DNA of 64,000 nucleotides, from NCBI GenBank assembly GCA_009103225.1, contig RHPI01003369.1, forward strand, positions 1,454,017 through 1,518,016, read 5' to 3'. The notes under the pieces were generated by a model that did no database searches, was not told where the DNA came from, and saw only the letters and a program-made list of their open reading frames with translations. Position 1 is the first letter of the stretch; each line of letters starts with the position of its first letter. This DNA comes from Chlorokybus atmophyticus. Lineage: Eukaryota; Plantae; Mesostigma and Chlorokybus algae. Of this stretch, positions 2,830-31,093 are shown one piece after another. The position numbers were made by a program, and so were the translations under genes.

Positions 2830-3041
2830 TAAAGAAAGACGGCCCATCTGCAGCGTGCTGTTGGTGATAGGCGCCATGTCCCAATAAAGTTGGTGACCAT
2901 CATTTGTGGCAAGCTACAATCTATGTTTTTAATGTTAGGGCCTGCAATCAAACTTATGACTTGGCATACACGCCGCTCGATTGAGACGCGCCGCTCCTGG
3001 AATTTACACATGGTGCTGCGCAAGGCGGAGATTGATGAGTT
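2830..3041 (+). mobile_element. DIRS-like reverse transcriptase C-terminal fragment
   Basis: Reads LQRAVGDRRHVPIKLVTIICGKLQSMFLMLGPAIKLMT...RRSW, homologous to 18117..18341 (VQRALSDKRHILVRLLARKYGKLHFMFVVLGPAVKLL). Truncated by the LTR at 3042. Confidence 0.7.
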
Positions 3042-3439
3042 TGTTGAGAACTAGTGATGCGCCTAGTGTGTGTGTATTTGCCTCCTACATACAAGTGTGC
3101 ACACACTAAGGACAAGTGCAGCAAGCACGCCAACTAAAGAGACAATGTGCGACCCACTGTATTAAGCAGTACACAGTGTCTTAAATACTATGCTACTAAG
3201 CACTAGTCAACTCTAGTCAACTCTGGTCAAAGTCAACACTAGTCAACACTAGTAAATGGTCAAAGTCAACGGTCAAAGTCAAAGTTGACCATGGTTGACC
3301 ATAACTGCCATAACTCCCGTAACTCCCGTAACTCTCGTAACTCATGTAACTCCCGTAACTATAAAGGTTAAGCTGATCGTACCAACTACATGTAGGCGCC
3401 GCCTATACATATACTTTTAACAAGCTATAACATCTAACA
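3042..3439 (-). repeat. 3' LTR of copia copy A
   Basis: Direct repeat of 4991-5388, preceded on the minus strand by a purine-rich tract. Confidence 0.95.
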
Positions 3440-4082
3440 CTCCCACGCGAGCAGCTTGACCTTGAACTCCAAGATCTTCTAGCAAGCTTACCCACATTAA
3501 CGTACTCCTTTGAACACTCCCACGGATGTGTTGCTCCCATGGAATTGATGCTTGTCTCCATGACACCATCTTTCTCCTCATGCTGTAAGACTACAAGGTT
3601 CCAATACTCCTTGTTTCCTCCTCATAGTTGTCGCATCAGGTTCCACAACGCCACGCCTGACCTTGCTTTGGTGGTTTCGAAGACTCCCTCAATGGCGAAC
3701 TACGCTATAAAGTACACTGAGTTCTCTACCTTAGCAATGCTGTACCAAAGTGTAGGCCGTGCAAGGGTTGATCAAACCCTTCTACCAAGGAAGCACCCCT
3801 CCCATCTTCTGTTAGCTAGCTATACAACTCAGTCCTTGCATGCTAATCAAGTGAAGTGTTCTAACTAGTACCGCACACCTGTGTGCTACCAGAAAACAAC
3901 TCCACAGCAATGCAACCTCTAGTGTATGCAGCTCAACACCAGCAACTACTTATAGGCTAGCAGTAACTCTCGCAGACCTTTGTGTCTGCGACCTCCGTTT
4001 ACGCATGTCCTTCACGCGCCCTTGCAGTGGGAGAGGACGGACGAACACCATCCACTGCAACTCCTTGAGGTCCTCACCAATG

Positions 4083-4868
4083 CTAGAAAGCAATTGCCAT
4101 CGTGGCGTGCTCCTCCTTGGTTGCCTCATCGTGGATCCTCTTCTGGCACTCGCGAATGAAGTGGCCCTTCATCTTGCAGTAGTGACACTCTTTGTCACGT
4201 GATGGCTTCCCACCACCCGCTTTGCTCCTATTTCGTGTGTGTTGAGAAGATGAGGCAGAAAGTGCAATAGGTTCTCCACCATTCTCTATCTCCTGAACAT
4301 CCAACTTGCCTTCCACAGCTAGCAGCTTAGGCACTACATCAGCAAACTTCAAAACCACATCTGAGGACTCCAACACAGTCACTAGCGTAGCAAAGCTCTT
4401 TCCTAAGCCAGCTAAGACTGCCCACATCACCTCCTCTTCCTTCACATCGTGGCCCACTGCTGCAAGGTCTTGCCAAAGCTCCCTTGCACGCGAGATGTAC
4501 TTCTGGATTGGCTCTTTGTGCTCCATCTTCAGAAGTGTCAGCTTGCGTCTCAGCTGCAACTTGCGCGAGTTGCTGTTGGCCTTGAAGAGGGTGTCGAAGA
4601 CCTCCCACGCCTCACGTCCAGTCTTGCAATCCGCAATATGAGGGAGATGGAAGTCGCTGACGTGCAAGCCTATCAGCGCAAAAGCTGATTGTGAATTCTC
4701 TGTCCAGGTACCAGTGTCACCTATTCTTGGTCGCAATAATGTGGAGGAGGTGGGATCGACAAAACTCCAAAGCTTCTTGCGGATCAGCACCAACTTCATC
4801 TTTAGCGACCATGAAGCGTAGTTGTGCAGATCAAGGGACTCGATGGGCATCCTATCCGTGTCAGCCAT
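4083..4868 (-). CDS. gag: Copia-type Gag (UBN2/Retrotran_gag-like) with CCHC zinc knuckle, 261 aa
   Basis: LDLHNYASWSLKMKLVL..KKLW; GREAWEVF..LF...SNSRKLQLRRKL; YISRARELWQDLAAVG; knuckle CHYCKMKGHFIREC. Confidence 0.9.
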   Translation of the reverse strand: MADTDRMPIESLDLHNYASWSLKMKLVLIRKKLWSFVDPTSSTLLRPRIGDTGTWTENSQSAFALIGLHVSDFHLPHIADCKTGREAWEVFDTLFKANSNSRKLQLRRKLTLLKMEHKEPIQKYISRARELWQDLAAVGHDVKEEEVMWAVLAGLGKSFATLVTVLESSDVVLKFADVVPKLLAVEGKLDVQEIENGGEPIALSASSSQHTRNRSKAGGGKPSRDKECHYCKMKGHFIRECQKRIHDEATKEEHATMAIAF

Positions 4869-4976
4869 TGCTTGCTACACAATAGTACAACTCACCCTCT
4901 CCCCAAGAACACTCTACTAGTAGGCGCCTATGCTCAACACTTTCTCTCACTAGCATAAGCAATCACACAAGCGAGT

Positions 4977-4990
4977 GTGGGCCCATAACC
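4977..4990 (-). promoter_or_regulatory. Primer binding site complementary to the anticodon stem-loop of initiator tRNA-Met (half-tRNA priming)
   Basis: GGTTATGGGCCCAC directly follows the 5' LTR. The plus strand reads GTGGGCCCATAACC, which matches the anticodon arm of plant tRNAiMet. Confidence 0.85.
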
Positions 4991-5388
4991 TGTTGAGAAC
5001 TAGTAATGCGCCTAGTGTGTGTGTGTTTGCCTCCTACATACAAGTGTGCACACACTAAGGACAAGTGCAGCAAGCACGCCAACTAAAGAGACAATGTGCG
5101 ACCCACTGTATTAAGCAGTACACAGTGTCTTAAATACTATGCTACTAAGCACTAGTCAACTCTAGTCAACTCTGGTCAAAGTCAACACTAGTCAACACTA
5201 GTCAATGGTCAAAGTCAACGGTGAAAGTCAAAGTTGACCATGGTTGACCATAACTGCCGTAACTCCCGTAACTCCCGTAACTCTCGTAACTCATGTAACT
5301 CTCGTAACTATAAAGGTTAAGCTGATCGTACCAACTACATGTAGGCGCCGCCTATACATGTACTTTCTACAACCTATAACATTTACCA
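4991..5388 (-). repeat. 5' LTR of copia copy A
   Basis: Direct repeat of 3042-3439, followed on the minus strand by the PBS. Confidence 0.95.
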
Positions 5389-5413: not shown

Positions 5414-5690
5414 TATCGACCCATAGCGACCCCGCAGCATGAGCTGTGTGTCGCATATAACTCGTGTGAAAGTTATATGAGTTCATGAAGCGCATGAAAT
5501 GCGCGCTTCTAAACTCAAAAAAACTCGTTAATGAGTTATGAGACTCTTGTGCCCTTACTGCCCTAGGCACTTGGGGGCACAAGCACCCATTAGAGTGAGT
5601 TATGAGTCACAAGCTCCTTGTCTAGTCGCTTGAAACCCTAGCACGGCGGCGCCATTCTTGGCATGGGTGGCGAGTGTGGTTTACTTTGCA
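5414..5690 (+). mobile_element. DIRS/PAT-like terminal sequences joined right-end-to-left-end
   Basis: 5414-5474 matches the right end seen at 26606-26666. 5474-5690 matches the left end seen at 24797-25000 and (reverse) 17030-17194. Confidence 0.8.
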
Positions 5691-5891
5691 GGTGTATCGG
5701 CTTCTCAGGCTTCGACTTCTGCGTCAGCAGCCATGGCGCCATCGACAAGTTGAAGACCAAAGAAGCGCGTGACTTTCGCACCTGACGTGAAGAAGTAGTT
5801 CCCATAGTTGTAGCCTAGCGCCCTAGTGCGGACTTGTGTATAGATCAACTTGTATCTATACACTTGTATATTTGTATTGTAATGCACTTAT

Positions 5892-5933
5892 AATACAATA
5901 CAATACAAATGTATTGTATTGTATTGTATTGTA
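5892..5933. repeat. Inverted pentanucleotide microsatellite (AATAC)n-(GTATT)n hairpin
   Basis: aatacaatacaataca (5892-5907) is the exact reverse complement of tgtattgtattgtatt (5910-5925). Confidence 0.9.
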
Positions 5934-5974
5934 ACGTAGCCACCGTGCTATCGACCCATAGCGACCCCCCAGCA

Positions 5975-6520
5975 TGATGGCATGATTACTCTCAGGCTAT
6001 GTTTACAGCATGATTGTATGAGAGTTCAACTGCTTATGCGGGTGCATTATTGAAGTGGTTCGCTCATGCAGTTAGGCCTTGAGCTTCAAGCTGATGATGA
6101 TGAACTGTACAAGGCATTGATAAGCAGCTTGCGCAGAGCTAATAAGTGTGCATATGCATGCATAAGCATGCATGCCATTAGTCACTTTATGTGACAAGGT
6201 ATTCGTGGCGTTTTAAAGGTCATGTGTGGCTTGTGTTGCCAAGAGAATTGTATGTGTAAGCACAAGATGGGCGAATAGGCTTTTTAGCTCTCTTATGGCC
6301 AAGTGGAAAGGCAACAACGAGATATGTACAAGGCTAGACCAGCATGGTGTTGGGGGTTCAATTGCACTCAGCCTGGTGTTTGGGGTGCTTGGCTTAATTG
6401 TTTACGGGCTTTGCTTACCCTCACAGGTGGGACTTTTGCAGTGGTTCACATAGAGTTTTGGTCATGCACCTTGGAGTTAACACCTGTGTTGAAAAAAAGG
6501 CGCTTACCATAGGGTTTAAA
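5975..6520 (+). repeat. Unclassified dispersed repeat, diverged copy at ~29470-30090
   Basis: Shared blocks such as gagttcaact..aagtggttcgctcat.cagtta..ccttgagct, ttatggccaagtgg.aaggc, cagcatggtgttgggg.ttcaattg and ggtgcttggcttaa. Confidence 0.7.
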
Positions 6521-8127: not shown

Positions 8128-11100
8128 CAGTCTACCCTCGCTAAGAGCATTCTGTTCATCCTCAGCCATCTCATGCTCTTGGCGGGTTTATTCTGTAAGC
8201 GTTTATAAGCATAATATGCTATTGACTACCAAGAGCATACACATGCTATTAGCGGGGTCTTGTGTATAATACTTTTTCGCTTTAGCATAGTGAGCAATGA
8301 AGCTCAACAATGCCCATGTTGCTACATTCTTGCTTGAATACCATACAGTTGCGTTGCTATAGTCAGATGAATCCAAACAACATTCTTACCATTTGGGTGA
8401 CATGCAGCCAAGATGCTGCGGTGGTAATGCATTGTGTAATGTACATGTGCTAAGCCTGTCAATGGGCTTGAAATGTGTTTCAGTGTGTTGACTTTTGTGT
8501 GTGATGCAAAGCATGCACACTTGCATGCATGTCTCATGCCTTGAACATAATGAAAGTCACATGTACATCACACATCTCAGCCACTAGTCATCAACTACAA
8601 GAGGGTCTTCGGCCGTTGCGCTGGTGGTGGCTGCGTGTGATGTTGATGCCTCATTGCTCGAGGCAAGAAACGTGCAAGCGTGTCTGGTGCGAGGAGCCAA
8701 ATAGCTGATAACAAATTACCACATTGCGAATGTGCTGCAACGCCAACTGTAGATGCTCAGGCATAAAACACTCATTGCCAGCCACGAAGGCCTCAATACT
8801 GTCCAAGTGCTGAAGACACCCGAAGGTCGTCACAACCGGCGGTGCGCACTCATCATCACATGCAATGTGTTATGTGAAATTTATGAGAAGGAAAGCTACA
8901 TACGGTGTGCATGCACGCGTACACACCTTCCGCGTCGGGATCGGCGGTGTCGCCCGGTGGTGGAGTCAGTGCCCCAACACTCATAAAAATGTCCTCGTCA
9001 CATTGGCTAGCCTCAGTAGGAAGATGATCGTCCGCCTCGACGAACTCGACAGCGGAGAGCATGTGAGCACGTGGAATGGGCAAACGCTGCATCATCTCAC
9101 CCATGTCGTGTATCACCGCGTGAATGATGCGCTTGGTGTCGGCGGGAGTGGCCTCATACCATTCCGCGGGGGTAATGCCAGTCTTCCTCCAACAGTTGGC
9201 AATGGCTGTGGCAGTCATCTCGTCCCACGCCTCACGACTCCACATGATGGCTTCACGCATCTGCACCTTCACTTTACTCAAGTTGAGGGTGGGTCTGCAT
9301 CATATTGCTAGAAATGATGCTGCACAAGCTTCCGTTTGTACCTGCACATGAAGACCATCAACAACATGATGTACACCACAACAAATTCTGACAAACAAGG
9401 GGGGTTTGAGGGGCCGGGGCCCCAACCCAGAAACTTTGATATTCTCATAAAGAAAAAGGCTCTGTTTGTTCATAACACGGCATGTATTGTGACTTACCTG
9501 GCCTTGTATGCAGCGATGATGCCAGCATCCAAAGGTTGGACTCTGGATATAGTGGCCGGGAGAAATAGACACGTTATGTGGCTTAATGACAACATTTGGA
9601 AGCCTTTTTCCAAGCCCTGTTATGCATACACGCAGGCATGCGTTGAGGAGTTGTCCAACAGCAGCAAGATGTGGTTGTTTTGTAGCTTCATATTTAGATT
9701 GAAGGCACACAACCACCGGCTAAAGACCTGTTGCAAGCATCACAACAGCAAGTGATATGCACAATCAATGCATATGCAGCTGCAAAGGAATGTTGCACAT
9801 GCACATGCACTCACCCCGGAGTTCATCCAAGCCTTCTTGTTATAGTTGTAGTCAACGCCAATGCGGATTGGCGTCCAAGTGCTGCCAAAGGACTTCGGAC
9901 ATTTGTAGGTGCCAATGATGAGGATTGGTCGCTTTTCAGAACCGTCAGCATTGACACACAAAACTGCCGTGATTCTGTCCTTCTCTCGCTTGCCCCCTCT
10001 AACTTCCTTCGATGCAACTACTAATGTACAACGCGGACGTGCTCTATAGAACACTCCGCTCTCATCCATATTCCATACATTAATAATGCGATAGTTTGCT
10101 AAGATCAAAGGCAATCAACTACGAGCTGCATCCACACCCTCCGCATCTGCATCAGCTGCTTCGCCATACAGAGTTTTGCCAGCAAATGAATGATGCTTTT
10201 TAAAACGGTGCACCCAACCTTGCGAAGCGTTGAACCCTTCTATTCCTAACCGGTTGGCAAAATCCGATGCTTTCTCCATCAACAATGCATCAGTGATCAA
10301 CGCATTGCGTGCTCTGGCCTATGCAAACGACTCATACAATCCATCCTCTAACTTGGGATGAGCCCCAATCCGCATCCTTTTGTATTTGGCCGCATGCTTG
10401 CCACCCACAACCCACCCAACACATTGGCTATTTGCTGTCGCTGTTTGTTGAGAAGTTTGGAGAGCGAACTCTGCTTGATAGTGAACTTCAACTTAGTTCT
10501 AACAATAGCAACCAAGTCCGCTTTCTTAAGACCTTCATTGGCGTCACACAACCCAAGGATGCGCTACTTGTCTTTTAGAGGAAGGTTATAACGCTTGATT
10601 TGTGCGGCCATGCGGACCTACAACAACGATGACACACTACATTACTGTTTGTACATACACAATCACACACTGCATGTACGTGCATGCACTGCATGTGCAT
10701 TGCAAACCCTTACTTGTTGTGCGCCGCCAGCAGCGGCGCTGCGACAGCCGTGACCAGCTAGCCGCCCTACAAATTGAGCGGCATGCCCATCAACTATACC
10801 CCGCCCGCCATTGCTGCCCCAACCTGCGTCTCCTCACCGCCGTTGCTGCCCCCAGCCTGCGTCTCCTCACCGTCGTTGCTGCCGTCCGAAGTGGCGGCGG
10901 TGATGCTTTGCAATGCTAAGTTACATTAAGATACAGTGATTTACATGCATCACGCCCATCATGCTCATCATGCTGTGCGCCGTATGCATCACACTTGCAC
11001 CCCCCCGATACAAGCATATCCTCACTTAAACTTACGATTTTTTCAAGGAAAAAAGATATGCTCTTTGCGGTTGGTCATATTCTCTGAAGACGCGTAATTT

Positions 11101-12169: not shown

Positions 12170-13657
12170 TAGTGTTGTGTGCGTGTGCCTACTCAATGTG
12201 TTGCTCCCACGGACTTGATGCTTGTGTTCATGACACCATCCTTCTCCTCGTGCTGCCAAAAGGCTAGCAGTAACTCTCGCAGACCTTTGTGTCTGCGACC
12301 TCCGTCTACGCATGTCCTTCACGCGCCCTTGCAGTGGGAGAGGACGGACGAACACCATCCACTGCAACTCCTTGAGGTCCTCACCAATGCTAGAAAGCAA
12401 TTGCCATCGTGGCGTGCTCCTCCTTGGTTGCCTCATCGTGGATCCTCATCTGACACCCGCATATAAAGTGGCCCTTCATCTTGCAGTAGTGACACTCTTT
12501 GTTACGTGATGGCTTCCCACCATTTGCTTTGCTCCTGCTTCGTGTGTGTTGAGAAGATAAGGCAGCAAGTGCAATAGGTTCTCCACCATTCTCTATCTCC
12601 TGAACATCCAACTTGCCTTCCACAGCTAGCAGCTTAGGCACTACATCAGCAAACTTCAAAACCACATCTGAAGATTCCAGTACAGTTGCTAGCGTAGCAA
12701 AGCTCCTTCCTAAGCCAGCTAAGACTGCCCACATCACCTCCTCTTCCTTCACATTGTGGCCCACTGCTGCAAGGTCTGACCAAAGCTCCCTTGCACGCGA
12801 GATGTACTTCTGGATTGGCTCTTTGTGCTCCATCTCCAGAAGTGTCAGCTTGCGTCTTAGCTGCAACTTGCGCGAGTTGCTATTGGCCTTGAAGAGGGTG
12901 TCGAAGACCTCCCACACCTCACGTCCAGTCTTGCAATCCGCAATGAGGGGGAGATGGAAGTCTTTAATGTGCAAGCCTTTCAGCACAAAAGCTGATTGTG
13001 AGTTCTCTGTTCTGGTACCAGCATCACCTGTTCTTGGCCGCAATGATGTGGAGGAGGTGGGGTCAACAAAACTCCAGAGCTTCTTGCGGATCAGCACCAA
13101 CTTCATTTTCAGCGATCATGAAGCGTATTGTTGTGCAGATCAAGGGACTCGATGGGCATCCTATCTGTGTCAGCCATTGCTTGCTACATAATAGTACAAC
13201 TCACCCTCTCCCCAAGAATACTATACTAGTAGGTGCCTATGCTTAACACTTTTTCTCACTAGCACAAGTGATCACACAAGCGAGTGTGGGCCCATAACCT
13301 GTTGAGAACTAGTGATGCGTATTACACATAATTGTGCACACATTAAGGACAAGTGCAGCAAGCACGCCAATTATAAAGACAATATGCGACCCATTGTATT
13401 AAGCAGTATACAGTGTCTTATATACTTTGCTACTAAGCACTAGTCACCTCAGGTCAAAGTCAACACTAGTCAACACTAGTCAATGGTTAAAGTCAATGGT
13501 CAAAGTCAAAGTTGACCATTGTTGACCATAACTGACATAACTCCCATAACTCTCGTAACTCTGTAACTATGACTATAACGGTTAAGCTGATTGTACCAAT
13601 ACTACATGTAGGCGCCGCCTATACATGTACTTTCTACAATCTATAACATTTAAAGCA
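12170..13657 (-). mobile_element. Gag-only copia copy C (5' LTR 13300-~13657, PBS, gag 12390-13106, 3' part deleted)
   Basis: Gag is highly similar to 4083..4868, with an N-terminal frameshift. PBS gtgggcccataacc at 13286-13299. Confidence 0.9.
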
Positions 13658-13659
13658 CA

Positions 13660-14045
13660 TGTGTAGGACAAGCATGAGGGTGCGAACTTGACTCGTGAAA
13701 ACATGCACATGCGTGCATCATTGGCCTTATGAAGGTGTGGGCTCGTCATCTATGTAGAGGTATCCAAACAGATACCCATTCATCTATTTGCATCCAGTTG
13801 TTGCGCATCCCTCCTCCCCTCGCATCGGGTGGGGGGGGACGGCCCGCACTTAACACCTTTGCTTGTCCACCTCTGTATTCACATCATGACTATTCATATA
13901 TTACGGTAAGAGGGACAAGAGGTTTGCATTTGCATTAGCATGTGGGGGGTGGTGACGTCAATGTGGGTGCGCCTGGCGTTAAACCCAGGGGCTCAGAGCC
14001 TATGCATGAATGCCCGCAACCAGCGTTGCTTACATGTGCTTGATG
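13660..14045 (+). mobile_element. DIRS-like gag internal fragment, inverted relative to the adjacent element
   Basis: Matches 25750-26120 (plus) and 15860-16240 (minus). Abuts the RT of the minus-strand copy. Confidence 0.8.
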
Positions 14046-15618
14046 CACCAGCATTGCAAGTCTCTGAGCAAACCATCGCACTTCTTGCCGGGGACATAAA
14101 CAGTGCCAGCGTGTGTATCCCACACAAAGCCGAGGAATGATGACTAAGCTGAGCACAATCTGCGCCTTGGTGTTGATCACCAGCCCGCACCATGCTGCAT
14201 CCGCTTGCACAATGCAGGGGGTGCAGGCATGCTCCGCCTTGGAGCGAGCAGCAAATAGGAAGTCATCAATATATGGCAATACGTGAATGCCCTGCACACG
14301 CCAATGGCGCACCAATTGCTTTATAACCTTCATAAACACAAAGCAAGCCGTGCTCACCCCAAATGGCAACGAGCAAGAGTCGAAGACTTTGCCCGCAAAC
14401 AAGAACCCCTGGTAGCCACAACAGGCGGGCTGGATGTCCACATGATGATAGCCGGACTTCAAATCCGTAAAGAACAACCAATCCTCAGGTTGCAGCAAGT
14501 TCGGGATGCTGCGTACATCCTTATACTTGAACGGCGTGTTCACCATGTAGGAGCTAACATAGCGCAAGTCGACAATGAGGCGCAACGTGCGGCCATGGTC
14601 GACCACATTGAGTGGGCTCACCACGAGGGGGGTGTCACACACTCTTGTGCGGACCCACTATGCTTTAGGTTGGCAATGGCAGCTGCAGTGAAGCCTGCAA
14701 AGTCGTGCACACCCTTGTGGTTGGTGAATGCCCTTGGTGGTGGTGGGTCTTGAGCCCATGGTAGCTTGTACCCATACTTCACCCATGAGAGCACTATATA
14801 AGACTATCAGAATTCACGCCATGCTGGCAGGGCATCACGCAGGTGATGACAAATAGGACCCCTCGACATTGAGGTTGGCAGAAACGCGAGCAAACTCATG
14901 GTTCTTTATCCAGTCATGAACAAGGTCCTCCTCCGTGCTAGTATAGGCCACTGCACACGACCACAGTTTCCTCAACAATGGAGCTCAGCAAGAGCCTCAA
15001 CGGCATGGCGACCGGAAAACGACCACAACTTGTGCAAACAGTGTTGAAATTAGGTTTTATTTTGCTCGGCACAACGCTATCTGCGTCAATGTGATGGTTA
15101 CAACATGTTTCATTCCCACTCGTCCTGTTTAGGGATGTTTTGAGACCCCTAGCAAAAGTTACGAGCAAAATAGCGATATTTTTGGTACTAGATCAATAAT
15201 CCAACACTTTCATTCACCCAGCTCTCATGTTAATTCATCAAAGCAACAGTTGCAACCGCAGACTAGCGTCCCATCGGGCTATAGCATCAACGAGTGCAAG
15301 TGTACAGCTACTAGGCTGTCACAACAGCTACAAAGCTGCGCTACCAAACTAGTGGCCGCCACGGCCGGCTGAGGGCTTACGGCAATAGGCTCGCAAGTGC
15401 CCCAGCTCCCCACAGTTGCAGCAAGTGCGGGAGTTGCGGTGGCCCCCCGTAGACGTGGCTTGAGACTGCATAGGAGCGGTCCTGTAACTGGTATGCCCCG
15501 CTTCAGTTGCATAGAACCCAGAGTAGCGGGGGGGNNNNNNNNNNNNNNNNNNNNNNNNNNNNNNNNNNNNNNNNNNNNNNNNNNNNNNNNNNNNNNNNNN
15601 NNNNNNNNNNNNNNNNNN

Positions 15619-15653
<35 letters not shown>

Positions 15654-17194
15654 ACTGACCCACCCCTTGTTGGGAGTGTAGGCCACCTTTGCCTCCAGCT
15701 TGGGCTGCGCCGCAGCCGCCTCCTTGATTGCCTTCTTAAGGCACTTTGCCTCTGCATCATCCGTAGCTAGAAAGTATCTCGTAAGCTCCTCCACCACCTT
15801 CCAACTATGCTTGTTGGCCACTTTCACATGGTGGAACTGCTAGCACACCTTGTCAAATGCTGGTGCACATAGCACATGTGAGCAACGCTGGTTGCGGGCG
15901 TTCATGCATAAGCTCAGAGCCCTTGGGTTTGGCGCAAGGCGCACCCACATTCATATCACCATCTTCCACATGCAAATGCAAATACAACCTGCTGTGCCTT
16001 TACCTTGTAAATAGTCATTATGTAAATACAGAGGTGGACACGCAAGGGTGTTGAGTGCGGACCCTCCCCCCCCACCGGACATGGGGGGAGGAGGGATGCG
16101 GGACAAGTGTATTTATATAGATGACTGTGTACCTATACATGCCTTTACATCGGCAACGGGCCAGCCTTTATAAGGCTCATGATAATCGCATGTGCGTGTG
16201 TGCGTGGGTAAAGCCCGCACCCTCATATATTCCTACATGTATGCACGTGCTCAACAAAGAAGGAGCCCACCTTTTATGTTCTCTTTGCGGCCTTTGATGA
16301 AGTAAGGATCATCGGCGAGGTGAGCGGGTACACGGTTGAAGGAAGCAGCCGCCGAGGCAATGTACGCCGCCACGTCGTTATGTTGCCTAGCCCGCCTCTT
16401 CATGTTCTCCTTCCAAGGGACAGCGGGATCGTTAAAGCGCGTGGCCAACACCTCCGCACGAGCATTGGGTGTGGTGGAGTCGCCTTTGTCGCGGCGAAAG
16501 ATGCTCACGAGCAGTGGGTGGTTGGGCTTGTCACTGGGCTTATCGCTAGGGATGGCGGGCGCCTTCTCACTCTTAAAGCGCATGTTCTCCGCCTCCAACT
16601 CCTCCAACCTCCTTGCCATGGCCTCTGTGGGTGTCATGAACGGGGTGGAAGCGTTGGAGAGCGGGCTCGCTCCCTCTTCTTACGCTTGTAAGTGATGAAG
16701 GGCGGGTCCACATCGTCCTGCTCCTCCTTGCCGCCACCATCACCCTCCTTATTTACCTCCTCCTCTCCCCTCCCCATGGGGGGGCGCACCTCTCCCTTTT
16801 CCCTCGCCGCTCTCCTCTCCTCCTCCTCACTCATGGTGTGTCAATGCGGACTTGTAGCTCGCGCCAACCTATTGGCGGCAAGCCTAGCCGCCACGGCCGT
16901 GGCTTCCACGCCGTTTCCACCATCAAGGGCACTTGCTTGCGCCCGGATTTGAGGCATAGTGGAAGGCCGATCCTCCCCTACCTCCTCACCACACCCGTCA
17001 CCCAAGCCAAGGATGGCGCCGCCGTGAAAGGGTTTTAAGTAACTAGATAAGGAGCTTGAGACTCACAACTCACGCTTGGTGAATGCTTGTGCCCCCAAGT
17101 GCCCAAGGCACTAAGGGCACAAGAGTCTCATAACTCATTAACGAGTTCTTGAGTTCGTGGGCGCGTACTTCATGCGCTTCATGAACACATATAA
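14046..17194 (-). mobile_element. DIRS/PAT-like retroelement, 5' portion (left terminus, ORF1/gag, RT), truncated in the RT thumb
   Basis: Left terminus TTATATGTGTTCATGAAG starts at 17194. ORF1 16251..16940; gag with ..VVEELT..LATDDAEAK.LKKAIKEA and CCNCGELGHLRAYC; RT 14050-14900. Confidence 0.85.
14050..14900 (-). pseudogene. DIRS-type reverse transcriptase
   Basis: GYKLPWAQDPPPP..F.N; VVSPLNVV..LRLIVDLR; TDLKSGYHHVDI; LPFGVSTACFVF.K; HWRVQGIHVLPYIDDFLFAA. Confidence 0.9.
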
Positions 17195-17204
17195 GTTAAT
17201 GGAT

Positions 17205-17335
17205 GTGGCGCATACGGGTGGAACTACCATACAATTCTCTTTGTTGTTGACATGCTTGTGTGTTACACTTGGTGTTCCCCTAATGTGAGTGTTTTTATGA
17301 GGCAGGGCGCATACATGCACACTAGTTTTCAACAT
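17205..17335 (+). repeat. Fragment of the second copia-family LTR
   Basis: Matches 30325-30452 (tgtggcgcatac.ggtggaact...cacttggtgttcccctaatgtg...gggcgcatacatgcacactagtt). Confidence 0.75.
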
Positions 17336-17930
17336 CTTTTGGCGGCCGTGGGCGAAGTTGGCATCATTGGCAAGGTGCGCGGGCACACGGTTACAGGAGC
17401 TCACCGCCGCGCCGAGGTAAGCTGCCGCATCCACATGTTGCCTAGCCCGCCTTTTTTTTTTTTATGTTTTTTTTATTCTTCTCCTCAGGGATCGTGAGCT
17501 CGCTACAATGGTTGCACATTGCCTCCACCCGAGCATTGGGAATTAAAGACGGTCATGGCAAATGATGCTCACACATAGTGGGGGGGTGTGCACCAGCTCG
17601 TCCACTACCTACCAATCATGCTTGTTTGCCACTTTCACGGAGTGGAATTGCTTACACATCTCCTTCAATGCTGCGCACAGAGCACACATGAGCAACACAC
17701 ATTGCATGTTCATTCGGGCCCAAAGCCACCGGGTCTAGCGCCAAGCGCACCCGCAACCCATTCCCATACCTACCATGTGCATATGCGCATGCAAATGCAA
17801 ATAGTGCTCTGTTGTGCTTATTACCTTAATGTGATGTGGTCATTATGCAAATACAGTGGTGAGCATGCAAGGGGGCTAGGTGCGGGCCCTCCCCCCCCCT
17901 GGATGCGGGGGGAGGATAGATGCTGAACAA
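17336..17930 (-). mobile_element. Scrambled DIRS-like ORF1/gag fragments
   Basis: DAAAYLGAAVSSCNRVPAHLANDANFAHGR and VANKHDW match ORF1 and gag of the other copies. Confidence 0.7.
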
Positions 17931-17949
17931 TGCATCTCGTGCATCTTTA

Positions 17950-18740
17950 TAGTCAATGAAGCAGCGTCTTTATACGGCCCACAAAGCACGCATGTGTAAA
18001 TGGGCATGGACAAAGTCCGCACCCACATGATGGTGTTCCAACGATACTCGTGCACACACGTGGTGAAAGTACGCGCAGCTTCTTGCGGATTGGTCATCAA
18101 CGTCAAAGCATAAGCGGTGTTCAACCATGTCGCTATCCTTGGCTATGTGTGGGATATACACCCTGGCGTGGTACATATTCCCAGCGACAAGAGGGATGGT
18201 TGGCTCAGCGTTGTGCAGCGTGCCCTTAGTGATAAGCGCCACATATTAGTAAGATTGTTGGCTAGAAAGTATGGCAAGCTACACTTTATGTTCGTTGTGT
18301 TGGGTCCTGCAGTTAAACTACTCATGAGAAGAGACACATGACGTATAATTGAAACACGCCACACTTGAAGTTTACACGTGTGGCTACAAGACCATCTTCA
18401 TGAGCTTTGTGTGGCGCCCATATGGCCTTCGGTGTAGTTAGGCATTGTGCAGTTTATAGATGCTAGCGATACTGACTAGGGGCTGATGCGCCATGGTACA
18501 AGTATTCACATGGCTACAAGCACATTTTAACAGCCGCTAAGTGCCTGACTTTATCTACATACCGCGAGCTATTAGGCTGTGAGTGTCAACTACTTGTTGT
18601 GGAGGAAGAGCTGTGCTATTGAATGGTGTGCTCTACCATGGCAATTCCCGCAATGTACTACATCATGCACAAAGGGGCAATGAAGCCGCGCACTTGCAAC
18701 AAGTGACATGTATAGCCTCTTATATTGCCACTAGTATTGC
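17950..18740 (+). mobile_element. DIRS-like RT thumb + RNase H relic
   Basis: GLVINVK..ILGYVWDI..IPSDK..VRLLARKYGKL..LGPAVKL; FIDASDTD*G; LSTYRELL; YIMHKG. Confidence 0.75.
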
Positions 18741-22899: not shown

Positions 22900-25800
22900 C
22901 ATAACAGTAGAAGGGTCTGATCAACCCTTGCACGGCCTACGCTCTGATATAGCATTGCTAAGGTAGAGAACTCAGCGTTGTTTATAACATGGTTTGCCAT
23001 CGAGACCTGAGCAAGGGCAGGCGTGGCGTGGTGGAACCTGATGCGACAACTATAAGGAGGAAACAAGGAGTATTGAAACCCTGCTGACAGCACGAGGAGA
23101 AGGATGGTGTTATGTAGGAAAGCACCAAGTCCGTTGGAGCAACACATTTGTGGGAACGTTGAACGGAGTGAGTTAATGTGGGTAAGCTTGCAAGAAGAAC
23201 TTGGAGTTCAAGGTCAAGCTGCCCGCGTGGGAGTGTTAAAGGCTATAAGTTGTTAAAGGTACATGTATAGGCGGCGCCTACATGTAGTTGGTACGATCAG
23301 CTTAACCTTAATGGTTATGGGAGTTATAAGAGTTATCGGAGTTACGGCGGTTACGGTCAACCATGGTCAACTTAAGCTTTGACTACTAATTATGACCAGT
23401 AACTTTGACTGTTGACTAGTGTTGACTAGTGTTGACTTTGACTAGTGCTTAATAGCATAGTACATAAGACACTATATACTGCTTGATACAGTGGGTCGCA
23501 CATTGTCTTTGTAGGTGGCGTGCTTGCTGCTTTTCTCCTTAGTGTGTGCACACTTGTATGTGGAAGGCGCATACACACACACTAGGCGCATTACTTCTCA
23601 ACAGGTTACGGGCCCACACTCGCTTGTGTGATTGCTTGTGCTAGTGAGAGAAAGTGCATAAGAGCCTACTAGTAGAGTGTTTTTGGGGAGAGAGTGAGTT
23701 GTACTATTGTGTAGCAAGCAATGGCTGACACATATAGGATCCCCTTCAAGTTCCTTGATCTGCACAACTATGCGTCGTGGTTGGTGAAGATAAAATTGGT
23801 GCTGATTTGCAAGACGCTCTGGAGTTTTGTGAACCCCACCTCCTCCACATTATTACGACCAAGAACGGGTGAAACTAGCTCCTGGACAGTGCACTCACAA
23901 TCAGCTCTTGCGCTGATAGGCTTGCACGTCAAACTTCCATCTCCCACTTATTGCGGATTGCAAAACTGGACGTGAGGCGTGGGAGGTCTTCGACACCTTC
24001 TTCAAGGCCAAGCAGCAATGCGCGCAAATTGCAGTTGAGGTGCAAGCACACACTCTTACTGGAGCACAAATAATCAATCCTGAAGTATATCTCGCATGCA
24101 AGGGAGCTTTGGCAAGACCTTGCGGCAGTGAGCCTCAATGTGAAGGAAGAAAAGGTGATGTGGGCAGTTTAGGCTGGCTTAGATAAGAGCTTTACTACGC
24201 TAGTAAGTGTGTTGAAGTCCTTTGATGCTGCATTGAAGTTTGCGGATGTCGTTCCTAAGTTACTAGCCTTCGAAGCAAAGGTGGAGGATGTGAACGGGGT
24301 TGGAAAGGAAGGTGGTGCAATTGCTTTTGCGGACTCAACCTCTCAGCACATCCGAAGCAAGCACAAGGGAGGCACAGCACATCGCAGTAGGGAAAGCCAC
24401 TATTGCAAGATAAAGGGCCACTTCATATGCAATTGTCAGAAAAAGATGAGGCAACCAAGGAGGAGCACGCCACGATGGCGATCGCTTTTTAGCATTGGTG
24501 AGGACCTCAAGGAGTCGCAGTAGATGGTGTTTGTCCGTCCTCTCCCATTGCAAGGGCGCGTAAAAGATATGTGTAGACGGAGGTCGCAGAAACAAAGGTT
24601 TGTGAGAGTTACTGCTAGCCTATAAGTAGTTGCTGGTTGAGCTGCATGCACTAGAGGTTGCATTGCTGTAGAGTTGCTTCTGGTAGTATACAAGTGTGCG
24701 ATTCTGGTTGGAGCACTATACTAGACTGGCATCCAAGGACTGAGTTGTATAGCTAGCTAACAGGAGATGGGAGGGGTGCTTTCCTGGGTAAAAAGGTATA
24801 TGAGTTCATGAAGTGCATACATTGCGCGCCCATGAACTCAAGAACTCGTTAATGAGTTATGAGACTCTTGTGCTCCTAGTGCCTTGGGCACTTGGGGGCA
24901 CAAGCACTCACCAGTGAGTTGTGAGTCACAAGCTTCTTAGCTAGTCGCTTGAAACCCTAGCGCGGCGGCGCCATCCTTGGCGAGGGTGGCGAGGGTGGTT
25001 TGGAGGAAGGATAGGAGGTCGACCTCCATGACCACCACACGGTCAAAAAGTGCCCGTGGCGATGGAGAGGACGTGGAAACCACGGCCAAGGCGGCTAGGC
25101 TTGACGCCAATAGATTGGCACGGGCTACAAGTCCGCGTCGCCACACCTTGAGTGAGGAGGAGGAGAAGAGCGGCGAGTGAAAAGAGAAGGGTGCGCCCCC
25201 CCCGTGGAGGTGGGAGAAGAGGAGGTGAACAAGGAGGGTGATGGTGACGAGGACGAGGACGAGGATGATGAGGACCCGCCCGTCGTCACTTACAAGCGTA
25301 AAAAGAGGGAGGCAAGCCCGCTCTCCAATGCTTCCACCCCGTCCATGACACCCACGGAGGCAATGGGAGGAGGTGGAGGAGTTGGAGGCGGAAAACATGC
25401 GCCTTAAGCGTGGGAAGGCGCCCGCCATCCCCCATGATGAGCCCGTCGACGAGCCCAACCACCCGCTGCTTGTGAGCATCCTTCGCCGCGACAAAGGCGA
25501 CTCCACTACACCCAATCCTCGTGCGGAGGCATTGGCCATTCGCTTTAGCGATCCCGCGGTCCCTTAAAAGGAGAACATCAAAAAGAGGGCTCGGCAACAC
25601 ATTGATGTGGCGGCTTGCATTGCCTCGGCGGCGGCCTCCTTCAACCGGGTGCCCTCTCACCTCGCCGAGGATCCCCACTTCGCCAAAGGCCGCAAAGAGA
25701 ACATGAAAGGTGGGCTTATTCTCTGTTGAGCATGGCCATTTGCACGAGCACACATGTAGGACACGCATGAGGGTGCGGACTTTACTCATGCAAACATGCA

Positions 25801-27377
25801 CATGCGTGCATCATCCGCCTTATGAAGGTGCGGGCTTGTCATCTACGTAGAGGCATATATATACATACATTGTTCCGCATCCCTCCTCCCCCCGTGTCCG
25901 GTAGGAGGGGGAGGGCCCGCACTTAACACCCTTGCATGTCCACCTCTATATTCACATTATGACTATTTATAGCAAGGTACAAGGTACCACAGGTTTGCAA
26001 TTACATTTGCATGTGGAAGATGGTGATGTTAAGCGGGTGCGCCTGGCGTTAAACCCAATGGCTTTAGCCTATGCATAAATGCCCGCAACCAGTGTTGCTC
26101 ACATGTGCTTTGCGCACCAGCATTGGACGAGGTGTGCACGCAGTTCCACCACGTGGAAGTGGCCAACAAGCATACTTGGAAAGCATATTGGAAAATGGTG
26201 GAGGAGCTCACGAGAGACCCTCTAGCTACGGACGATGCAGAGGCAAAGCGCCTTAAGAAGGCAATCAAGGAGGCAGCTGCGGGGCAGCCCAAGCCCAAGG
26301 CGAAGGCGGCCTACACTCCCAACAAGGGGCGGGGCCAGTACCCCCCCCGCTACTCCGGATCTGATGCATCTGGTGCGGNNNNNNNNNNNNNNNNNNNNNN
26401 NNNNNNNNNNNNNNNNNNNNNNNNNNNNNNNNNNNNNNNNNNNNNNNNNNNNNNNNNCCCCCCCCCCCCCCCCCCCCCGCTACTCTGGATCTTATGCATC
26501 TGGTGCGGGGCATACCAGGTACAAGACCGCTCCTATGCAGTCTCAGGCCGCATCCACGGGGGGCCAGCGTGATGCCCGCACCTGTTACAACTGTGGGGAG
26601 ACGTCTATCGACCCATAGCGACCCCCCAGCATGAGCTGTGTGTCGCATATAACTCGTGTGTGAGTTCTGATCAACCCTTGCACGGCCTACACTCTGGTTT
26701 AGCATTGCTAAGGTAGAGATCTCAGTGTAGTTTATATCATAGTTTGCCATGAGAGGAGTCTTTAAGACCACCTGAGCAAGGTCAGGCATGGCATGGTGGA
26801 ACCTGATGCGACAACTATGAGGAGGAAACAAGGAGTATCGAAACCTTTTAGCCCTGCTGACAGCACGAGGAGAAGGATGCTGTCATGAAGGCAGGCATAA
26901 AGTCCGTGAGAGCAACACATCCGTGGGAGTGGTAAGTGGAGTAAGTTACTGCGGGTAAGCTTGCAAAAAGAACTTGGAGGTCAAGCTGCTCGCGTAGGAG
27001 TGTCAAAGGTTATTTATTGTTAAAGGTACATATATAGGCGGCGCTTACATGTAGTTGGTACGATTAGCTTAACCTTGATAGTTACGCAAGTTACAAAAGT
27101 TACGGCGGTAATGGTCAACAGCCGTTACGGTCAACCATGGTCAACTTTAACTTTGTTCATTAACTTTGACCGTTGACTAGTGTTGACTTTCACTCAAAAT
27201 GACTAGAGTTGACTGGTGCTTAGCGGCATAGTATATAAAACACTGTATGTTGCTTAATAGAGTGGGCCGCATATTGTCTGTGTAGTTGGCGTGCTTGCTG
27301 CACTTGTCCTTGGTGTGTGCACACTTGTATGTGAGAGGCGCATGTACATACACTAAGCGCATCGCTAGTTCTTAACA
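22900..27377 (+). mobile_element. Tandem gag-only copia copies sharing an LTR; the second is interrupted by a DIRS-like insertion
   Basis: 3' internal region + PPT (22900-23233), LTR 23234-23603, PBS ggttacgggccc 23604-23615, decayed gag 23721-24490, internal region to 24796 resuming at 26667, PPT, LTR 27001-27377. Confidence 0.88.
24797..26666 (+). mobile_element. Internally deleted DIRS/PAT-like element with both termini, inserted without TSD
   Basis: Left end (T)ATATGAGTTCATGAAG; ORF1/gag to CYNCGE; right end TATCGACCC...GTGTGTGAGTT. The flanks rejoin to the copia sequence ..aaaagGTTctgatcaaccc. Confidence 0.85.
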
Positions 27378-28570: not shown

Positions 28571-29460
28571 TATTGACCCATAGCAACCCCCCAGCATAAG
28601 CTGTGCACTGCAGATAACTCATATAATAGTTTCGAGTGTATGGGCGCATATTTTAGAAACTCATGTCAATTTCAAGTTCCTGTGGAATGATCAATCCTTA
28701 AATAGCAACATATAAGTCGTCACCTTGTTGCAGTGCTTTCACCTTGGCCATGCTCAGCCTTGGAGCTTGCAGCGAACCGCAAGTTGTCAGTGCATGGCAA
28801 TTCATGGATGCCTTATACACGCCAATGGCGCACCATTTTCTTCATCACTTTAGTAAACACAAAGCACGATGTGCTCGAACTAAATAGCTACGAGCGGAAG
28901 TTGTGCACCATCCACCCATAGCAATTCCCCAGCATGAGCTGTGTGTCGTCATATAGCTCGTGTGTGAGTTTGCTGCGGCCTCATGACCAAAACCGCAATA
29001 ATATTGCAATTTACAAAGTATGGAGCACAAAGTCATCCACTTAATCAATGCAGAGAAGTACTACATATAAAGCTAAATAAGTGTGTAAACACGGACCCGT
29101 TAAGGGGTTAATGGCCTCCTTGCCCTATAAAGGGCTTGCAAAAGTAGACACGCAGCTTAACCTCCCCGCATGTATAATCATAAAGTCATGCTTGCCTCCA
29201 ATAAGAGCGGTTTGAGACTGCATCGGAGCGGTCGTAAAGATGTTCGGCCCCGCTCTAGATGCGTAAGACCCTGAGTAACGGGGTGGGGGGTAGCCCCCCC
29301 CCTTGTCAGTAGTAGGCTTTGTCTTGGGTTTGGGTGTGCAGCGTGCATCTTGTTCACTGCCTTCCGCAAGCACAATGCGTAAGCATAGCTAGATGGGGGG
29401 TTGCATTCCACCTCATCCACCACCTTCCATGTCACGACTAACAAGCAAGGCATGCACTCT
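28571..29460. mobile_element. Scrambled DIRS-like relics (terminal motifs at 28571 and 28911-28970; RT 28733-28910 minus; gag 29125-29460 minus)
   Basis: Minus strand reads CFVFTKVMKKMVRHWRV*GIHELPCTDNLRFAASSKAEH and PKPKTKPTTDKGGGYPPPRYSGSYAS..TAPMQSQ. Confidence 0.75.
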
Positions 29461-29469
29461 CATGCTGCT

Positions 29470-30090
29470 AGGTTGACAGCATTACTGTACGGGAGTTCAA
29501 CTTCTTAAGGGTGTGCAATATTTAAGTGGTTCGCTCATACAGTTACTCCTTGAGCTCACAAGCATTGGGCAAGATGAACAATAGAAGGCAGTGATAAACA
29601 GCATGCACACAATTGAGCAGTGTACATGCCATCCGTATGCTACTGATGAGACATGTGTCACAATAATGTATTGTGTGCAATTCAATAGCTGGTAATAAAC
29701 ATGGATGAGGTGACATGTGTCACACCATGTTGGCATATACCTTTGGTATATGCTGGTACCTCTTGAAAGTAGGTATGGCCAAGTAAGTTTAATGTGTCAG
29801 CACAGTGTGGGCGAAAAGGTGTTGATGGTTGCTTAGCTTAATTATGGCCAAGTGGGAAGGCGTAGCGAGGAGTATGAAAGGCTAAGTCAGCATGGTGTTG
29901 GGGATTCAATTGAATAAGCCTAGTGCTCACTTGCTGTGTGTATAGGGTGCTTGGCTTAACTGGTGAAGGGGCCTTTCTTACCCTCTTGTGTGGGGGCGTT
30001 TTGAGGTGTTCTACATAGAATTTGGGTGTACATTTTGTGGTTAACGCCAGTAGTGATGAATAGGCGCCTTTGTTGGAGGTTAAGCATATG
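29470..30090 (+). repeat. Unclassified dispersed repeat, partner of 5975-6520
   Basis: See the 5975-6520 feature. Confidence 0.7.
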
Positions 30091-30132: not shown

Positions 30133-31093
30133 GATGTTACTTAGATTATGTGCAGCGGTTATACTATGGGAGTTACAGTCAACAGGAGTTATGGGAGTTA
30201 CGACAGTTATGGTCAACATTAACTTCGCCCGTAGACTGGTCTTGATTAATTTTTACTGGAGTCGACCTTATATGGAGTTGAATAGTTCTTTCTAGTGTTT
30301 ACTAGTCTAGAATATAAGTCACCGTATGTGGCGCATACAGGTGGAACTGCAATACATGTCTCTCTCGTATTGACATACTTATATGTTGCACTTGGTGTTC
30401 CCCTAATGTGTGCGCATGTATGAGGTAGGGCGCATACATGCACACTAGTTCTAGACAGGTTATGGGCCCACACATACTTAGGAGTGCATGAAGTTGTGGT
30501 TGTTGGTAGGGGAATAGGTTGCAAATTTGCGTGTAGTGGAGGGGCAACTGGTCCCGCAGGCATGGACAACATCAAGGTCACTATCGAGCCATTGGACGTG
30601 GACAACTACCATACGTGGAGCATCAGATGGAGTTGTTGCTAGTACACAAGGACATGTGGAAGTATGTGAACCCCGAGGAGAAGGTGCTATCAGGAAAAGA
30701 GGCAGTTTGGGCAAAAAAGGGAAGGCTTTAGCATTGCTGGGTTTGCACGTTGGTGAGCATCACTTGATTATGGTGAGAGAGTGCAAAGGTGCAAAATACT
30801 TGTAGGCAAAGCTTGAGAGCCACTTCTATGCCCAAAACATGGCGAGGAGGCTGCAGTTAAGGCAAGAGCTGAGTGCATTGCGCAAGGAGAGTGGAGAGAC
30901 TATCACCAAGTTTGTGGCGCGAGCAAAGGTGCTGTGGAAGGACTTGTTGGGTGTTGGGCACGAGTTGAAAAAACAAGAAGTAGTGTGGGTTGTGCTTTCA
31001 GGGTTGCAAAAGGAGTACATGGTAGTGGTGACCATTATGGAGTCTGCAACGGAAGAGTTAAGCCTTAATGGCGTGATACCACGGCTTCTTTAA
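30133..31093 (+). mobile_element. Second copia family: LTR (to 30457), half-tRNAiMet PBS (30458-30469), decayed gag
   Basis: ggttatgggccc; MDNIKVTIEPLDVDNYHTWSIR; ARRLQLRQELSALRKESGETITKFVARAKVLWKDL.GVG..VVWVVLSGLQKEY. The LTR start is approximate. Confidence 0.8.

Follow-up and report, generated by a model that had tools for sequence, protein, structure and literature searches.

Results and Discussion

Features of the locus

The first 32 kb of the window (the whole 64,000-nucleotide stretch of Chlorokybus atmophyticus DNA analysed here) form a repeat graveyard that holds several copies of a gag-only copia family (Pfam Retrotran_gag_2), as well as fragments of a second retroelement with a CCHC knuckle in its gag and YIDD in its reverse transcriptase (RT). 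The left-end and right-end modules of this second element are called A and B, respectively. The features discussed below are the following:

2848 to 3039, plus strand, same orientation as the joint: fragment of a DIRS-type pol (the post-YxDD 'thumb'), located by tblastn with three DIRS-type pol proteins
3042 to 5388, plus strand: gag-only copia element with LTRs 97% identical, between the pol fragment and B1; flanks gagtt vs cgcgc
5414 to 5474, plus strand: B1, 61-bp right-end module
5454 to 5479, no strand: palindrome across the joint, two 10-base arms (9/10 complementary) separated by 6 bases; the left arm is wholly within B, the right arm has 5 bases in B and 5 in A
5472 to 5474, plus strand: GTT, putative crossover or overlap trinucleotide at the boundary of B and A, from the empty and filled copia site
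5475 to 5682, plus strand: A2, left-end module, a chain of hairpins rich in GAGTT and AACTC
5522 to 5537, no strand: second AACTC-N6-GAGTT site, a paralogue of the junction site about 61-63 bp downstream of it
5683 to 5948, plus strand: u, 266 bp, ending in a microsatellite palindrome of TACAA and TTGTA
5949 to 5977, plus strand: B2, a second B by similarity, cut after 29 bases by an unrelated repeat at 5986-6503
13938 to 17193, minus strand: copy 2, with A1, gag with the full CCHC knuckle and RT with YIDD; 3' part lost
24798 to 26666, plus strand: copy 1, consisting of A1, a gag truncated within the CCHC knuckle, and B; it interrupts a copia element, whose alignment defines both termini
28571 to 28631, plus strand: divergent B module (79%), with no A adjoining on its right
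28910 to 28970, plus strand: B module (90%), bordered immediately on the left by an antisense RT fragment

B1 is 58/61 identical (95%, E 7e-19) to the right terminus at 26606-26666. The adjacent A2 matches the left terminus at 24798-25001 with 85.6% identity over 208 bp (E 2e-56), and a second left terminus at about 17192-16988 on the minus strand with about 84-86%. The two modules are in direct contact at positions 5474 and 5475, with zero intervening bases. These matches bear out the preliminary description, in which a right terminus was said to be fused straight onto a left terminus, and they support the assignment of 5414-5682 as the right-end-to-left-end junction of a DIRS-order element. 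Such a joint is an expected and known structural hallmark of DIRS/PAT-type elements, encountered here in a new, decayed family. It is present once only, and no further joint of B with A is found in the window.

The repeat family of 5986-6503, which recurs approximately at 29455-30067, has a sharp left boundary and adjoins a cut B in one case and a cut antisense gag in the other. Two fragment pairs combine an RT fragment with an inverted gag fragment of the same element type: 13654-14056 (plus strand) with RT at 14028-14657 (minus strand), and 18042-18332 (plus strand) with gag at 17601-18054 (minus strand). These pairs correspond either to fold-back rearrangements or to nested insertions on opposite strands.

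Termini and insertion site of the element

The termini are readily apparent from copy 1, which interrupts a copia copy at 23233-27377 (minus strand): positions 3774 and 3776 of the reference copia align to 26668 and 24797, respectively. With a slash marking the boundary, the empty site in the alignment of three other copia copies reads ..GGT/CTGATC, and the filled site reads ..GGT/ATATGAG ... GTGAGTT/CTGATC; a target-site duplication is absent at the 24798-26666 insertion. The comparison of filled and empty site identifies 24798-26666 as a mobile unit with A at its start and B at its end, and the termini recognised previously are thus genuine ends. The element ends in GTT on the right; on the left it is preceded by GGT or, in copy 2 (17193 downward), by CTT before ATATG. 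Element and target overlap by 1-3 bases (N[G/T]T), at the copia site by at most T (GGT vs GTT). In DIRS1-like elements, NTT at both ends recombines with an identical target trinucleotide and generates no duplication (PMC3266345, PMC7192593). The ends of the window element and its insertion without duplication agree with this published NTT rule (PMC3266345, PMC7192593).

The same site bears on the reading of B plus A as an ordinary LTR, with 5414-5682 as a solo LTR. Although the 269 bp of the joint form a discrete unit between unrelated sequences, the copia insertion is bounded by the start of A and the end of B, not by the start of B and the end of A. Furthermore, the target duplication is missing and B occurs again 266 bp after A. 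Contradicted by the filled and empty copia site, the solo-LTR reading is extremely improbable and was rejected.

The 61-bp B module starts at the identical base beside five unrelated left neighbours (5413/5414, 5948/5949, 26605/26606, 28570/28571 and 28909/28910), which include the middle of the gag CCHC knuckle in sense orientation and the antisense RT fragment at 28753-28909. No convincing left extension of B is common to the copies, and template switching at the B boundary may account for its identical start. Splicing was rejected as the origin of the join between knuckle and B in copy 1, because GT/AG boundaries are absent. B itself is unconvincing as antisense RT coding sequence, with only 3-5/20 residues similar, and the B pair at 28571 and 28910 was rejected as a second B-A-B locus, since the 278 bp in between are the antisense RT fragment and not A.

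Two further observations concern the gag region. Divergent gag copies at 17194-17440 and 30312-30605 are broken at almost identical positions, with ..ACTTATAT at either boundary; the interrupting sequence is the left end of copy 2 in the former and a copia-like LTR end in the latter. This common boundary reflects either a shared target site or residual homology. The assembly gaps (N runs) at 15535-15618 and 26379-26457 coincide in the two gag copies, falling within a poly-proline (CCN) tract.

Class assignment

The RT of the window element, found in copy 2, matches Pfam RVT_1 (E 1.2e-14) and is 41% identical over 162 aa to the pol of a metagenomic element, sharing also the upstream GY.LP motif. 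A Dam-like methyltransferase is part of that metagenomic pol, and a recombinase-like ORF comes after it; a weakly Phage_integrase-like ORF after pol is present in the related metagenomic family of L050. On these similarities the window element is assigned to the DIRS order, and from its sequence the RT would belong to the DIRS clade. The best named relatives in the homologous-protein search with the RT are unnamed or hypothetical Closterium proteins with 46-49% identity; this search returned only such relatives (Closterium, JGI entries) and no same-family copies. Exact-pattern scans for B and A in metagenome and viral collections gave no match, and Rfam gave none in the window.

PAT-like elements carry a methyltransferase domain after RNase H, and members of the DIRS order a tyrosine recombinase in place of a DDE integrase. 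None of the copies in the window reaches past the RT thumb. All of them are without their 3' halves, and tblastn with two recombinase-like ORFs from relatives finds no tyrosine recombinase in the window at E below 1.

In the published split-direct-repeat layout, A1 stands at the 5' end and B1, A2 and B2 at the 3' end (PMC6681497, PMC4157794). The window element shares with the PAT-like/TOC1/kangaroo and Ngaro elements of this layout a joint of B and A, probably near the 3' end, with B following again, as well as a gag with a CCHC knuckle, a DIRS-type RT and the absence of a target duplication. It differs from them in that an intact copy, a recombinase and a methyltransferase are missing from the window, in the 266 bp between A2 and B2, and in the length of B, only 61 bp. 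The inverted terminal repeats and the long internal complementary region of DIRS1-like elements, on the other hand, are not found: A and B are not inverted copies of each other, and the segment resembling such a region spans 10 bases only.

Layout of the block and origin of the joint

Beyond 5682, at about position 205 of A, the locus no longer resembles the 5' UTR and gag of copies 1 and 2. The following 266 bp, u, have no second copy within the window. B then recurs 536 bp after the first B, which gives the layout B-A-u-B. Upstream, the pol fragment at 2848-3039 is matched by the L001 pol with E 0.01 over the whole window, and by the pol proteins P0011 and P0009 with 5.5e-5 and 5e-4, respectively, against 3.1 kb. 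Between this fragment and the joint lies the copia element at 3042-5388, which has no target-site duplication, the pol fragment directly before it and B1 25 bp to its right. It is probably a recombinant between two copia insertions. Recombination of this kind would have removed the RNase H, methyltransferase and recombinase of the element, and it would explain both the loss of this part and the absent duplication.

Two origins had been envisaged for the joint, an integrated circle junction and the internal B/A junction of a split-direct-repeat element. The B-A-u-B layout and the upstream pol in the same orientation make the internal junction the better fit of the two, and the integrated circle the less fitting one. 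It is thus probable that B1 and A2 meet here inside one decayed split-direct-repeat (PAT/TOC/kangaroo-type) element, at its 3' end, in the order A1...body...B1-A2-u-B2. Considered as a sequence, 5414-5682 is best explained as a copy of the circle junction of a DIRS-order (PAT/TOC/kangaroo-like) retrotransposon. It would serve as the template, or be the image, of a closed circle which the recombinase integrates during the replication cycle.

Some features speak against an internal joint. B2 is cut after 29 bases, the membership of u in the element lacks confirmation by a second copy in the window, and the unrelated left neighbours of B at 26605, 28570 and 28909 are not predicted by the layout. 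No single intact A1...B1-A2-u-B2 copy is found in the window, where the A...B termini of copy 1 and the block of B-A-u-B (cut) at 5414-5977 with its upstream pol never occur together in one intact copy.

Metagenomic DIRS-order loci were compared with the window element. L051, with the layout B(98)-A(150)-u(213)-B, and L010, with B(20)-A(115)-u(203)-B, are unrelated DIRS-order families with the same B-A-u-B block, in which u measures 203-213 bp. The automatic search for the split-direct-repeat signature among 80 fetched loci found only L010; in the family of L047, L056, L060 and L063 the right end was not delimited in this comparison. Most contigs of the metagenome families are plain A-body-B, so that the internal joint may not be obligatory in these families, or may have collapsed in assembly.

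These contigs, most of them plain A-body-B with different flanks, leave room for a second origin, in which the right end of a resident copy was the exact integration point of a circular copy, or of a small non-autonomous A-u-B element, and the junction lies between two elements. Recombinase integration at the element's own half-site would produce exactly such a base-perfect joint. Three or four contigs per family are plain A-body-B with unique flanks, and the A-u-B block follows the full copy in L051 but precedes it in L004. Moreover, tandem copies are reported for TATE (PMC6681497), and DIRS-1 inserts preferentially into DIRS-1 (PMC7192593). However, unrelated families also contain B-A-u-B, with a u of about 200-270 bp, which would be expected of a built-in module, u is not derived from the element body, and the plain contigs are possible assembly shortcuts through repeats. 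Taking these points together, such a tandem is unlikely; structurally, it differs from the internal joint only in whether the block transposes with the body.

Other contigs of the same collection show the following. The 4441-bp element of L049, L050 and L052 and the 4139-bp element of L001-L003 and L005 are 99.6-100% identical between contigs, while their flanks differ. At both ends, AAA or AA is common to element and target, and most of these contigs are without the internal B-A block carried by L051 and L004. The contigs L012 (period 4457) and L009 (period 4303) read as head-to-tail dimers of a DIRS-order element; they represent either true tandems or circles, or assembly paths through repeats.

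Structure and significance of the palindrome

The preliminary description also pointed out a palindrome created by the joint, with 10-bp arms around a 6-bp spacer. This is borne out at 5454-5479 with 9/10 pairs, and in the composite obtained by joining the ends of copy 1 (26646-26666 to 24798-24802) with 10/10. B alone already contains AACTC-N6-GAGTT, to which the join adds 5 pairs (chance about 1 in 1000). Folding of B (5414-5474) gives its own hairpin of GCGAC and GTCGC besides AACTC-N6-(G/A)AGTT, and A folded as RNA (copy at 24798-25010) reaches z -5.45.

As DNA, the hairpin at 5445-5490 has -5.5 kcal/mol and z -3.05. The gain on joining amounts to only -1.8 kcal/mol, which is matched by 10-27/100 local shuffles. 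Arms of 9/10 with a 6-base spacer occur 15 times in the window; consequently, what sets this palindrome apart is its position and not its mere existence. The innermost (closing) pair is missing from two of the four B copies, with no compensatory changes, and arm covariation, proposed earlier as a check, is not visible among these four copies, all of which are decayed. The palindrome at the joint is real but weak.

These properties bear on whether the palindrome has a function of its own. It could be a by-product of the AT-rich start of the element (ATATG) falling beside a repeated pentamer motif, and the 15 palindromes of equal quality, the small energy gain on joining and the decay of the arm in 2/4 B copies are consistent with this. 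On the other hand, 5/5 extra pairs at one pre-specified position have a chance of about 0.001, and analogous helices span the junction in three other families. A mere by-product is rather doubtful.

These three families (L051, L004 and L010) are unrelated metagenomic DIRS-order families, and the joint is bridged by a helix in each of them. That of L051, which has a loop of 25 bases, is formed by a stretch of 20 bases within B, paired with the final 9 bases of B and with positions 4-13 of A (z -4.2 vs +0.2 for B plus flank). In L004, the final 6 bases of B find their partner immediately behind the first A hairpin (z -2.7 vs +1.2), and in L010 there are 7 pairs across the joint (z -3.1 vs -0.6).

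The palindrome as a proposed recombinase site

Cre, FLP, Xer and lambda Int exchange strands at the edges of the spacer. The palindrome had been proposed to be a tyrosine-recombinase core of this kind, with inverted arms flanking a spacer of 6-8 bp, and its geometry, with 9/10 arms and a 6-base spacer, is indeed similar to that of loxP, FRT, dif and the attP core. The position of the exchange is different. The boundary GTT/ATATG between element and target lies 5-8 bp right of the dyad centre, inside the right arm; expressed as GAGTT/ATATG, it falls 5 bases past the 6-base spacer, whose GTGTGT is absent from the target. Neither strand exchange at the spacer edges nor spacer homology to the target is thus found. 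Because the putative crossover at GTT lies inside the right arm and not in the 6-bp spacer, the reading as a Cre/FLP-like core fails, and the filled and empty site give no support to a classical tyrosine-recombinase core. In comparison with the known sites, the arms of the palindrome are also short and AT-rich.

A less strict version can be considered, in which the palindrome is a candidate duplex binding site for the tyrosine recombinase or another protein of the element. It would be one of two paralogous AACTC-N6-GAGTT sites in a field of GAGTT and AACTC pentamers, and cleavage would be shifted to the GTT that borders the right half-site on its outside. The second site (5522-5537) has 15/18 bases in common with the junction site and is invariant in all three A copies (columns 48-63), which are otherwise about 85% alike. 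The pentamer occurs 6-7 times in the 269 bp of B plus A, a 6-7 fold enrichment matched by 0/20000 shuffles, and arms of 5-10 bp with a 6-bp spacer resemble the geometry of dif, loxP and FRT. Against this stand the exchange at the spacer edges by Cre, FLP, Xer and lambda Int, compared with a boundary outside the spacer here, the mere 1-3 bases shared by target and element, and the lack of dyad symmetry around GTT. Furthermore, the junction helix of L051, with its 25-base loop, cannot be a core site. To our knowledge, no DIRS-order tyrosine recombinase has a biochemically defined site. Altogether, a duplex binding site appears somewhat unlikely. The joint at 5445-5495 together with the filled and empty site pins the putative crossover of this family to a GTT and provides a defined sequence for binding, cleavage and circle-detection tests.

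The left arm as a possible end splint

The single-stranded hairpin, the other option considered in the preliminary description, fits better than a core site, although the gain of -1.8 kcal/mol and the shuffles of equal energy temper it. Read in order, the left arm CATAT.AACTC complements bases 1-5 of the element and then its final 5. Owing to this complementarity, it could act as a splint that brings both termini of a linear single-stranded cDNA or RNA together. The 5+5 split would be explained by the need of a splint for duplex on either side of the nick.

An arrangement of this type is reportedly present in DIRS-1 of Dictyostelium as the internal complementary region (ICR) (Cappello, 1985). 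In the DIRS-1 ICR, 33 bases complementary to the left end are followed by 55 complementary to the right end (PMC7192593), and these 88 bases are essential for retrotransposition via a linear single-stranded cDNA (PMC7192593). The window element is similar in having a segment near the right end complementary first to the 5' end and then to the 3' end, and an NTT-type trinucleotide at the joint; the left arm would be a miniature of the DIRS-1 ICR. In contrast to DIRS-1, the segment comprises 10 bases instead of 88, the element has no inverted terminal repeats, and the function is only proposed. In addition, the segment lies 6 bases from the right end and so forms a simple hairpin.

The hairpin or mini-ICR reading is plausible and has modest support; with an energy gain of only -1.8 kcal/mol, the splint stays a hypothesis. 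Only 5+5 AT-rich pairs are available for it, and an alternative of the L004 type exists in the window element itself, where the GAGTT that ends B has a potential partner in the AACTC behind the first A hairpin. Extended to other families, it is possible, if tentative, that PAT-type elements in general carry a mini ICR, that is, a short segment at most about 50 bases from the joint, complementary to the last bases of B and the first bases of A, which would juxtapose the ends of the linear single-stranded intermediate. If true, a mini ICR would bring the end architectures of DIRS1-like and PAT-like elements together in a single end-joining mechanism, and the position of the joint in the middle of a palindrome arm would be explained. 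If it fails across families, the locus is no more than a commonplace remnant of a known type of element among decayed repeats.

Other coding remnants of the window include minus-strand ORFs judged from their translations only: those at 8859-10114 are pogo/Tigger-type DDE transposase-like, with a CENP-B-like part, and the one at 1000-1320 is integrase-like.
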